Source: Mantamonas sphyraenae STR306 (taxonomy: Eukaryota; Protista; CRuMs). Taken from it: a stretch of 64,000 nucleotides of DNA. The notes beneath the pieces are model-generated. The model did not search any database, had not been told where the DNA came from, and worked only from the letters and a program-made list of their open reading frames with translations. Numbering within the stretch: the first letter of the stretch is position 1; every line of letters starts with the position of its first letter. Both the position numbers and the translations under genes were made by a program. The stretch spans positions 1 through 64,000 of the forward strand of contig JAPMXV010000042.1 of NCBI GenBank assembly GCA_026936335.1, given 5' to 3'. This document shows, piece after piece, positions 30,274 through 32,950 of this stretch.

Positions 30274-30534
30274 CTACAGGCCCCCCAGCGAGTCCAGCAG
30301 CGAGTCAAGCTCGCTTTTCGCATTGTCTTTGCCCTTGCTGCTCTCTTTCGCCTTGCCGGGTCCCGCTGTCAAGCTGTCCAACAGCGAGCTGAGGTCGTCC
30401 CCACCCCCGCCCGTATTCGTCTCTACCGCCACGGTGTCCTCTCCAGAAGGCTTTGTCGGCGTCGTCAAACTGCTCAGCAAGTTCTCCAAGTCGTTTGTCC
30501 TGTTTGCCAGACTGGACCCACCGCTCGAGCTTGC

Positions 30535-30575
<41 letters not shown>

Positions 30576-32950
30576 TCGACGATTCACCACCGCTGCTTCC
30601 ACCACCAAACGAGGCAATCAGCGCATCAATGTCCCCGCGCACCGCGTCTTCAGACTCTTGCGCCTTGGCTGGCTTGCCCCGTGTCTTGTTTGCATTCACC
30701 GGCAACAGTCGGATCGCCTTGCGTGGTGTCTGCACCTCGTTCCTTGTACCGCTCGTGTCTTGGAACGGCGCGTCGGCCAGGTCCAAGTACACGCCGTGTT
30801 CGCTATGCACACGCACCACAAATGTGCGGTCGATGCCTGGCTTCCTTGTTGCTGGGATGATCGCATACGGCACTGCAGACTCAACATACGCTTCACCGTA
30901 CGGCACCGCCTCCACGTCAAAGTCACGCGCAAACGTTTGGCTGTTCACAAAGATGTGGTCGCTGGACACAAAGTCACTCGGACCTGTGAACCGCACGCGC
31001 TTGGACCGTCCTGTACCAACGCGCACCACATAGAACGCAATGTGTGCCAGGGGAGCGTCCTGTGCCGGCAGCTGAACCAGCTCAATGGTTACACGTTCGC
31101 TTGCGCGCGGGTACATCAGAAGCTGGTGGTTGCCCACCCACGCGCCCGTGCTGTCCATGCATCCACCGGCCGTTCCGGCCAGGGTGTTCCACTCGCCCTT
31201 CCAGCTCGCAATGTCCAGATCTGGAAGCATGTAGCACTCGATGGGGTGTTCGCAAAACATGGTCAGCTCCCATTTGCTGTACTCGTGTGGGTAGAACGTG
31301 CACGGCACCACAATGTACTGCCGATTCGGCTCCAGCACAACCTCCTTCGACACCTCTCGGTTGTTTGACCAGATGCTCTTGTCCACCACATCCTGAGCCG
31401 TCGCAGAGATGCATCTGCGGCTGTTGTCCTTCACCTCGATCACGTAGAATCCGATGTGGACGTCGTACGTGTGGTGCAGCCCATCCATGCGGATGTCCGG
31501 TTGCTGCAGCGTAATAAACACCTCTGTGTCTGGCTCCGACACCGTCACGGCAAACTGCTGGTTGTTTGTCCATGCGGGCGAGTTCATACATCCGCCTGCG
31601 TTGTTCCCTGCCCATTCCCCTGTGCAGTAGTACTTCTCCCACTGCTCGCCAATGTCGTCTTCGTACAGCCGGCACACGTACATCTTGTTGAAGACGTTTA
31701 CAAAGTCCTCGTAGCACATATAGAACGTGCCGTCTTCTGCAAACGAATGGCCCAGCTTCTCCAGCAGCTCCTCCGTCCATTCGCTCGCCCCGTCGCTCCA
31801 AGCTCCTGTCCACTCCTTCTCGCCCCACGGGTTGCGCATGTGGATCAGTCGCACCCCTTCCACCTCGACGCACTTGAGGATCCCGTACGCGTGGTTGATC
31901 AAGATTCCCTGTCCGTTGTCGTGCTCCGTCGACATGTCGTCCGAGATCGCTGTCGACATCAAGAAACTGTGTGTCCCCTCGCACAAACACCCGCCAGTGA
32001 GCCGACGCCGCCCCATCCCCACGCCCCACCCTTCTCCCCCTTGCCACCCGTTTCCCATGCAATCTCTGCTTGCCTCCTCCGCTTCCTCCCGCACACTCAC
32101 CTTTCGCGCTGGTACTTCAACATTCGCTCCCAAAACACGCCGCGCTCGATCTCCGCTTTGTTCTGCCCGCTGCTAAAGTCCAGTGTCTCTGGCACGCCGC
32201 CTGTAAGATCCACCAGCGCCTGCACCACCGACCCGTCGTTCAAGGCGTCGTAGTTTTTGTGCAGCTTGGCGTAAGCCTTCTCCAGCAGAGGCACCCACAC
32301 CTGTGAACGCGTGCCGTCGTGTTTGTTTGTGGCCGCATCGAGTCCCGTGTCAGCATATCCATACTCCCGACCTTTGTTTCCCTTTCGCCTCCTTCTTCCC
32401 CGTTGCCTTTTCAAACACAGCACGCCTGCCTCTCCTGCGTTCTGCCAGGTAGGTGCGCCCTCCTCCCCGGTGCCCTCGCGGCCTCCTGCCCTCCTCCTTC
32501 CTGCCCTTTTCAACTTGCCTCGTTTGCGTCCACGCACTTGGCGTACACCACGTCATCGTTGTAGTCACACGGCACACGGTCGTCCACCACCACGGGCACC
32601 CACTTGCCGCTTTTGAAAAACTTAAACTCGTAAATGCCATATTCGCGGTTCGACTGCCCAAACAGCTTCTGGAACAGATCCTGCCGCGTTGCAACAACGC
32701 ACAGTCCTCCCAACAGCCAACAATCGCCCAGCTTGCCCTGCTTCACGTCTCCGGCCTCCACCCCGTCCACAATCAGGTTGTAGTTTTCGGGATCCGGGCA
32801 GAACTCGGACGGCCGCTTCCACCCGGCAACCTCGTCCTTGTACTCTCCGGGCCTGTACAGCGACGCAGGGATCGGTTTAAACTCTGCATCCTCAAACATT
32901 TGCTGCTGTTCCTGGCACTGCGCCAACAGCGCCTCAAAGTTGCTGCTCAT
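30274..32950 (-). CDS. Calpain: CysPc plus two calpain-III (CBSW) domains plus a C-terminal LD-motif tail
   Basis: Catalytic triad in [12 protein letters not shown] and RNPWG; LLEKAYAKL; two GEW...AGGC domains. GC-AG intron 32301-32518 and GT-AG intron 31967-32100. Confidence 0.93.

Follow-up and report, generated by a model that had tools for sequence, protein, structure and literature searches.

The window analysed here (64,000 nucleotides of Mantamonas sphyraenae STR306; assembly GCA_026936335.1, contig JAPMXV010000042.1, positions 1 to 64,000 of the forward strand) contains a calpain gene on its minus strand (32950-30274), which is composed of three exons and two introns and has a product of about 774 amino acids (aa) as predicted from the sequence (Table 1). 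Mantamonas is a marine gliding flagellate belonging to CRuMs, the sister group of Amorphea. The gene model was read from the sequence and profile searches were performed exon by exon; overall, a CysPc protease core is followed by two CBSW domains and by a disordered C-terminal tail that carries four motifs resembling the LD motifs of paxillin. A complete, transcript-derived orthologue from Mantamonas plastica (P0001), which is 62% identical, was found to be collinear with the gene exon by exon, exon 1 corresponding to its residues 1-144 (77% identical), exon 2 to residues 146-210 and exon 3 to residues 212-790. Intron 1 starts with a GC donor (GCAAGT) where GT is usual, while intron 2 is a standard GT-AG intron.

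The Pfam family Peptidase_C2 matched all three exons (model positions 1-297) and matched P0001 with an E value of 7.5e-84. The catalytic triad is intact, with the Cys in GDCWLLG (codon 32720-32722), the His in NHAYGIL (31876-31896) and the Asn in RNPWG (31822-31836), and the His and Asn columns are at least 90% conserved in our calpain alignment (A1). Judged from its sequence, the protease looks catalytically competent; it is probably cytosolic and presumably under calcium control. Two Calpain_III stretches were detected in exon 3, and two beta-sandwiches are present in an AlphaFold2 model of P0001 (alignment of 59 sequences, shallow over the tail), the core of which was predicted with a per-residue confidence (pLDDT) mostly above 90. 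No Pfam match to the EF-hand family was obtained on exon 3 or on P0001, where the C-terminus is formed by the disordered tail. An MIT domain is lacking as well, as the CysPc core starts at approximately residue 19 in both Mantamonas species and the P0001 open reading frame (ORF) is complete. A preliminary description of this locus, which had proposed an intact CysPc core, two CBSW domains and a tail replacing the penta-EF-hand (PEF) or MIT module, was thus confirmed on each of these points.

The same description had noted four LD motifs in the tail, including a terminal ELDSLLDSL, and all four were recovered exactly where it had placed them. A permissive pattern ([LIM][DES]xL[LIMV]xx[LFIM]) matched four times in the 145-aa tail, compared to a mean of 0.0135 matches in 200,000 composition-preserving shuffles, 17 of which reached at least two matches and none of which reached three, indicating that the motifs are not due to chance. 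A stricter form of the pattern, in which the second position must be D or E, was found at a frequency of 0.11 per 1000 aa among 158 calpain relatives (see below); together, the shuffle test and this rarity confirm the four-motif observation. Among the 20 hydrophobic residues between motif 1 and the C-terminus, 17 lie inside the motifs or represent the terminal Leu. Motifs 1, 2 and 4 fit the consensus LDxLLxxL with an acidic residue at +1 if Ile, Phe or Glu is accepted as a conservative replacement. The criteria applied to LD motifs include an acidic residue, located at +1 or, in the inverse class, at +6, and a helix inside a disordered region, the helix-in-disorder pattern being the signature that defines the true ones (Alam et al., 10.1101/278903). 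In the model of P0001, the tail (residues 615-792) was predicted with a pLDDT below 50 and contains helices at 718-727, 764-771 and 782-790 that correspond to motifs 2 to 4, while motif 1 is non-helical; none of the tail helices was docked on the core. Searches with the tail returned only sub-threshold Pfam matches (GET2, Pex19, VPS53_C) and no calpastatin family, and only low-complexity matches among solved structures. A reading as AP-adaptor dileucine signals was set aside, as the pattern fits but such signals normally act on the tails of membrane proteins; a clathrin-box reading was also set aside, there being no conserved clathrin box in the tail.

The closest resemblance of the tail is to the paxillin of the same organism. 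The M. sphyraenae genome (25,061,354 bases in 78 contigs, GC content of about 59%) was scanned with a codon pattern for D-hydrophobic-[DE]-x-hydrophobic-hydrophobic-x-x-hydrophobic, which led to a paxillin gene on contig 41. The first of its two exons encodes nine LD motifs in Gly/Ser/Thr-rich linkers and the second four LIM domains, and the top match of the LIM region among solved structures was paxillin (E 3.6e-31). The LD set consists of MSDLDALLGSL at the start, one ELDALMSSL, four ELDALMGSL, DLDALLSSA, ELDSLLNSA and ALDSILSGL. This is roughly twice the number of motifs in animal paxillin, and the four near-identical SELDALMGSL repeats suggest an internal tandem expansion. When the calpain tail was compared to the LD region of this paxillin by BLASTP (E 5e-5), its four motifs aligned one-to-one with LD1-LD4 at matching spacing, and the seven residues SELDSLL were common to calpain motif 4 and one of the paxillin LD motifs. 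Within the sequence evidence, this alignment is the strongest support for a paxillin-type label, and the assignment of the tail to the LD motif class is well supported. The LD pattern as such is not generally enriched in the genome, because the reversed control of the codon scan gave more matches (106) than the forward pattern (59). The Pfam models Paxillin and Talin_middle had no match, but neither of them matched any control genome, hence they are uninformative on absence.

The preliminary description had made its reading depend on conservation of the motifs in orthologues, and their number, order and C-terminal position were indeed kept in M. plastica while the linkers diverged. In P0001, the order of the four motifs is retained, and DLEDLLNSF, the final one, is found close to the C-terminal end; motif 2 is identical at nine of nine positions and all hydrophobic positions are kept, while the linkers differ in both length and sequence. 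Relatives were sought among 5.8 billion proteins by a word-indexed search and among 1.84 billion representatives by a full HMMER scan, and P0001 was the sole close relative in both, with 732 bits compared to 363 bits for the next match. Among the 158 calpain relatives that the large profile search had retrieved, P0001 alone has an LD tail; the six other calpain loci of the M. sphyraenae genome also lack one, the single motif found nearby belonging to a downstream gene. The nearest relative outside Mantamonas (P0012; Diphylleia rotans, CRuMs; 1181 aa) is a tandem double calpain with two CysPc-CBSW units, in which the core shared with Mantamonas has been extended in another manner. As neither this protein nor the six other loci carry an LD tail, the calpain-LD architecture is so far confined to one genus: the search of proteomes for CysPc-CBSW-CBSW proteins with such a tail, which the preliminary description had suggested, recovered M. 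plastica and nothing beyond Mantamonas. Its statement that it knew of no described calpain of this architecture agrees with a full-text literature search (calpain and LD motif), in which no calpain carrying LD motifs was found. A catalogue of calpains lists 41 domain arrangements, with short motifs beyond its scope (Zhao et al., PMC3563603). The protein would therefore represent a new combination of calpain and LD-motif client, present in two species of one genus.

Outside the calpains, two amoebozoan proteins, P0099 (Acytostelium subglobosum; XP_012750339.1) and P0124 (Ceratiomyxa fruticulosa), consist of an N-terminal kinase, a disordered linker and four Calpain_III domains, and their linkers hold one or two good LD motifs (ELDSLLNGI, ELDDLLEEM, ELDDLLDGM). 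Since these kinases carry both elements, LD motifs and CBSW domains appear to have been paired twice independently.

Table 1 Features of the calpain gene (positions in the window) and of other loci in the M. sphyraenae genome (positions in the locus or contig named)
Feature	Position	Strand	Content	Support or remark
Exon 1	32519..32950	minus	Start codon, 18-residue N-terminus, first part of CysPc including the catalytic Cys	Peptidase_C2 positions 1-128, E 9e-31
Intron 1	32301..32518	minus	GC-AG, GCAAGT...CACAG	Its removal gives collinearity with P0001
Exon 2	32101..32300	minus	Middle of the CysPc core	Peptidase_C2 positions 122-193; phase 2 end, split codon AG|T = Ser
Intron 2	31967..32100	minus	GT-AG, GTGAGT...CACAG	
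Exon 3	30274..31966	minus	End of CysPc, two CBSW domains, disordered tail	Stop codon 30274-30276
First CBSW domain	31228..31650	minus	Calpain_III beta-sandwich	Calpain_III E 1e-27, best stretch; strands 321-457 in P0001 model, pLDDT >90
Second CBSW domain	30778..31221	minus	Calpain_III	Second Calpain_III stretch; strands 462-607 in P0001 model
Disordered tail	30277..30711	minus	145 aa, Ser/Gly/Thr/Lys-rich	Equivalent P0001 tail pLDDT <50; no Pfam domain
LD-type motif 1	30607..30633	minus	DIDALIASF	Aligns to paxillin LD1 DLDALLGSL
LD-type motif 2	30466..30492	minus	DLENLLSSL	Identical in the M. plastica orthologue
LD-type motif 3	30370..30396	minus	DLSSLLDSL	Ser at +1, DD pair just upstream, Asp at +5
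LD-type motif 4	30286..30312	minus	ELDSLLDSL	Three residues before the stop
Paxillin gene	L008 (G000:C41:105500-111500)	minus	Exon 1 L008:2008-2997, exon 2 L008:1239-1955	
Acidic-protein copies L001, L002	G000:C36:278714-281875 and 288859-292020			

Candidate receptors for the motifs are encoded in the same genome and come from two families already known to bind LD motifs, talin and vinculin. A talin gene on contig 58 (L029:4658-9667, plus strand; G000:C58) encodes FERM_M, an IRS-type PTB domain, four Talin_IBS2B stretches and I_LWEQ, and matches talin-1 with an E value of 2e-91. In the product of a vinculin-family gene on contig 38 (L016; G000:C38:165000-174999), the Pfam Vinculin head was matched at the N-terminus (E 1e-6), and similarity to vinculin tail chains extends over the final 176 residues (E about 1e-3). 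The modelled tail of this protein forms a helical bundle that is nearest to vinculin and metavinculin tails (TM 0.57/0.65; E 3.6e-3, below the significance line of the tool), and its matches include 9QWO, a solved entry titled vinculin tail with paxillin LD2. When the vinculin-family tail (L016:7041-7568) was paired with the 45 C-terminal residues of the calpain tail in a complex prediction, the score was 0.01 with controls not run, which speaks neither for nor against binding. Paxillin and vinculin have been named the ancient core of the LD system (Alam et al., 10.1101/278903). The occurrence of talin, a vinculin-family protein and paxillin in a CRuMs flagellate places this LD core outside opisthokonts and amoebozoa, for which its origin was proposed by Alam et al. 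Adhesome components inside the cells of CRuMs have been reported already, according to the mention of Kang et al. 2021 in PMC12993075.

Taken together, these data suggest, tentatively and at slightly under an even chance in our estimation, that the tail acts as a multivalent LD tether that would concentrate the calpain on helical bundles of the talin or vinculin type, in competition with the nine-LD paxillin. Under this proposal, the disordered tail with its four paxillin-class motifs would occupy the place of a PEF or MIT module. If it behaves like known LD motifs, each motif would form a short acidic amphipathic helix whose Leu face could lie on the hydrophobic groove of a helical-bundle LD-binding domain, while its Asp or Glu would pair with basic residues flanking the groove. 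Four weak sites on flexible linkers could provide avidity for clustered receptors, the likeliest of which would be the vinculin-family tail and the talin rod bundles that the organism's own paxillin should also engage. The protease would thereby be enriched at talin-vinculin-paxillin complexes of the gliding cell, close to classic calpain substrates and competing with paxillin. We infer the binding of the tail, the identity of its receptors, and the localisation and substrates of the protease; a function in adhesion targeting is plausible, and the interpretation given in the preliminary description, taken as a whole, is partly supported.

Several observations weigh against adhesion targeting by the tail. 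Motif 3 lacks an acidic residue at +1, motif 1 contains Ile and Phe, and the conservation of the motifs rests on two species, the Diphylleia relative having a different, coiled-coil-like tail without an LD motif. Regarding the adhesion proteins named in the preliminary description, talin, a vinculin-family protein and paxillin are present, while FAK and parvin were not found: the FAT domain of FAK, like GIT and CCM3, was undetectable in the genome except for spurious sub-threshold matches, and parvin was not seen in the nine of 20 CH-domain matches that were inspected, a search that was not exhaustive. The matches of the vinculin-family protein to vinculin tails are individually weak (E about 1e-3). 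Moreover, LD-like helices are promiscuous and overlap with nuclear export signals, and an LD-like helix of calpastatin binds EF-hand domains of calpain (Alam et al., 10.1101/278903).

This promiscuity is in line with an alternative in which the helices dock elsewhere, either on an unrecognised partner, on the protease's own CBSW or catalytic domains (autoregulation) or on another copy of the protein (oligomerisation), so that the likeness to paxillin would reflect a shared amphipathic-helix grammar only. The LD-like motifs in the linkers of the amoebozoan four-CBSW kinases P0099 and P0124 point in the same direction, although only two of four kinase-first CBSW proteins have such a motif. AlphaFold2 left the tail helices of P0001 undocked from the core, though on an alignment that is shallow over the tail, and the one-to-one alignment with paxillin LD1-4 stands. 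We consider docking elsewhere unlikely, if still the best placed of the alternatives to an adhesion tether.

Calpastatin, whose inhibitory unit consists of A and C helices around an inhibitory B segment, provides the model for another alternative. In analogy, the acidic helices of the tail might bind a calcium-loaded protein of the penta-EF-hand type, by which a PEF-less calpain would either obtain a calcium sensor in trans or control its own activity; the A and C helices of calpastatin may be similar to motifs 1 and 4. The Mantamonas calpain has no EF-hand module of its own, and residues 156-165 of calpastatin were classified by an LD-motif finder as an LD motif with a helical subdomain of calpain as its binding partner (10.1101/278903). 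On the other hand, no Pfam Calpain_inhib match was obtained at E values up to 10 and no calpastatin chain in the solved-structure search, the two orthologues share no B-type inhibitory segment between their motifs and have unrelated linkers, and the motifs are nearest to the LD motifs of the organism's own paxillin, which makes this arrangement improbable. A similarly low probability is assigned to the motifs being nuclear export signals, that is, Leu-rich helices read by exportin-1 that would keep the protease outside the nucleus. The sequences of export signals and of LD motifs overlap, certain LD motifs serving as both, and exportin is universal; inspected by eye, motif 2 of P0001 and motif 4 of M. 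sphyraenae fit published export-signal spacings, but the fourth hydrophobic position that is needed is conserved between the orthologues in none of the motifs. Four copies also exceed the need for export, and their style is that of a paxillin LD string.

Type-1 MIT-interacting motifs are C-terminal and are defined by Arg/Lys residues. That the motifs are ligands of MIT domains, the tail imitating ESCRT-III C-terminal helices and the arrangement of calpain-7/PalB (MIT domains on the calpain) being inverted, is suggested by the PalB/calpain-7 type of the CysPc-CBSW-CBSW core, the C-terminal position of the last motif and a compatible hydrophobic spacing (1-5-8); as the Arg/Lys that defines type-1 motifs is missing from all eight motifs in the two species, we regard this as very improbable. 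Equally improbable is that the motifs have no function and are by-products of low-complexity sequence: in favour of it are the biased composition of the tail and the restriction of the family to one genus, but no shuffle reached three motifs, motif number, order and C-terminal position were kept while the linkers diverged, and helices were predicted at motifs 2 to 4.

Compared to known systems, the tail motifs resemble those of the paxillin family in their consensus, in the acidic residue beside the first Leu, in forming short predicted helices in Gly/Ser-rich disorder and in being present in several copies. They differ in lying at the C-terminus of an enzyme that has no LIM domain and whose binding is putative, whereas those of paxillin lie at the N-terminus of a LIM adaptor. 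LD motifs grafted onto signalling enzymes or scaffolds, which they link to LD-binding domains, are also known from non-paxillin proteins (DLC1, RoXaN and the LDMF-predicted set of 10.1101/278903), but no protease is among those described there. In ten unicellular proteomes, Mantamonas not among them, between 1 and 20 mostly lineage-specific non-paxillin LD proteins were found, and that study mentions calpain solely in its section on calpastatin (10.1101/278903). Like the tail motifs, calpastatin A and C are LD-like helices of acidic, amphipathic character that belong to the calpain system and lie in disordered sequence; in calpastatin, however, they are found on the inhibitor, flank the inhibitory segment and bind EF-hand domains, and the Mantamonas calpain has neither the segment nor an EF-hand. 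With PalB and calpain-7 (MIT-CysPc-C2L-C2L) it shares a CysPc core followed by two domain-III (CBSW/C2L) units, but it starts 18 residues ahead of the core without an N-terminal MIT domain, and the LD tail has no counterpart in these proteins.

In animals, cleavage of talin, paxillin and FAK by calpain drives adhesion turnover, and the route by which the protease reaches these substrates is indirect and debated. The proposed role of the Mantamonas enzyme would be like that of animal calpain-2 in focal-adhesion turnover, with a calpain acting on complexes of talin, paxillin, FAK and vinculin. The animal enzyme differs in being a PEF-containing heterodimer that is recruited indirectly, while the address label of the Mantamonas calpain would be built in, in a genome with no detectable FAK. 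Cas, talin, FAK and PYK2 are listed as calpain substrates, and calpain associates with FAT (Alam et al., 10.1101/278903). If the tether reading is true, this calpain would demonstrate, through the LD address label that it carries itself, that a simple linear motif can couple a protease to a scaffold; the module is small and easily testable, and the few non-paxillin LD proteins would be joined by a protease. The gene also comes from CRuMs, outside the range in which LD signalling was proposed to have originated (10.1101/278903), though adhesome components of CRuMs had already been reported. A broader interpretation, which we consider doubtful, is that the calpain is hard-wired to the talin-vinculin-paxillin machinery by its LD string and that calpain-driven remodelling of adhesion or gliding complexes predates animals and Amorphea, a direct motif tether and not adaptor kinases having come first. 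Were the partner an EF-hand protein, the tail would instead illustrate a way in which a calpain lacking a PEF module might gain calcium control in trans.

Other matches in the genome are of minor relevance. Focal_AT had two weak matches (E 0.03) in a small acidic protein, which were rejected; they represent two copies of one 229-aa ORF (247-aa open frame) that are inverted and lie about 10 kb apart. A weak GIT1_C match inside a large unrelated protein, cohesin-loader-like by reading alone, and a weak PDCD10 match inside a long coiled-coil protein were rejected as well. Further LD-like motifs were observed at four loci (L007, G000:C21:219000-225500, minus strand; L005 on contig 17; L006 on contig 29; L022:1135-5001 on contig 34). 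The proteins in this set include an acidic protein (more than 1096 aa) with DFDALLDELDAL at its end, a membrane protein whose motif DLDALLEGL lies within a Gly-rich stretch, a 520-aa open frame containing DLDALLDNL, and a 1289-aa protein that combines a CH domain and a long helical region with NDLDDIMSGLMM and three LIM domains.

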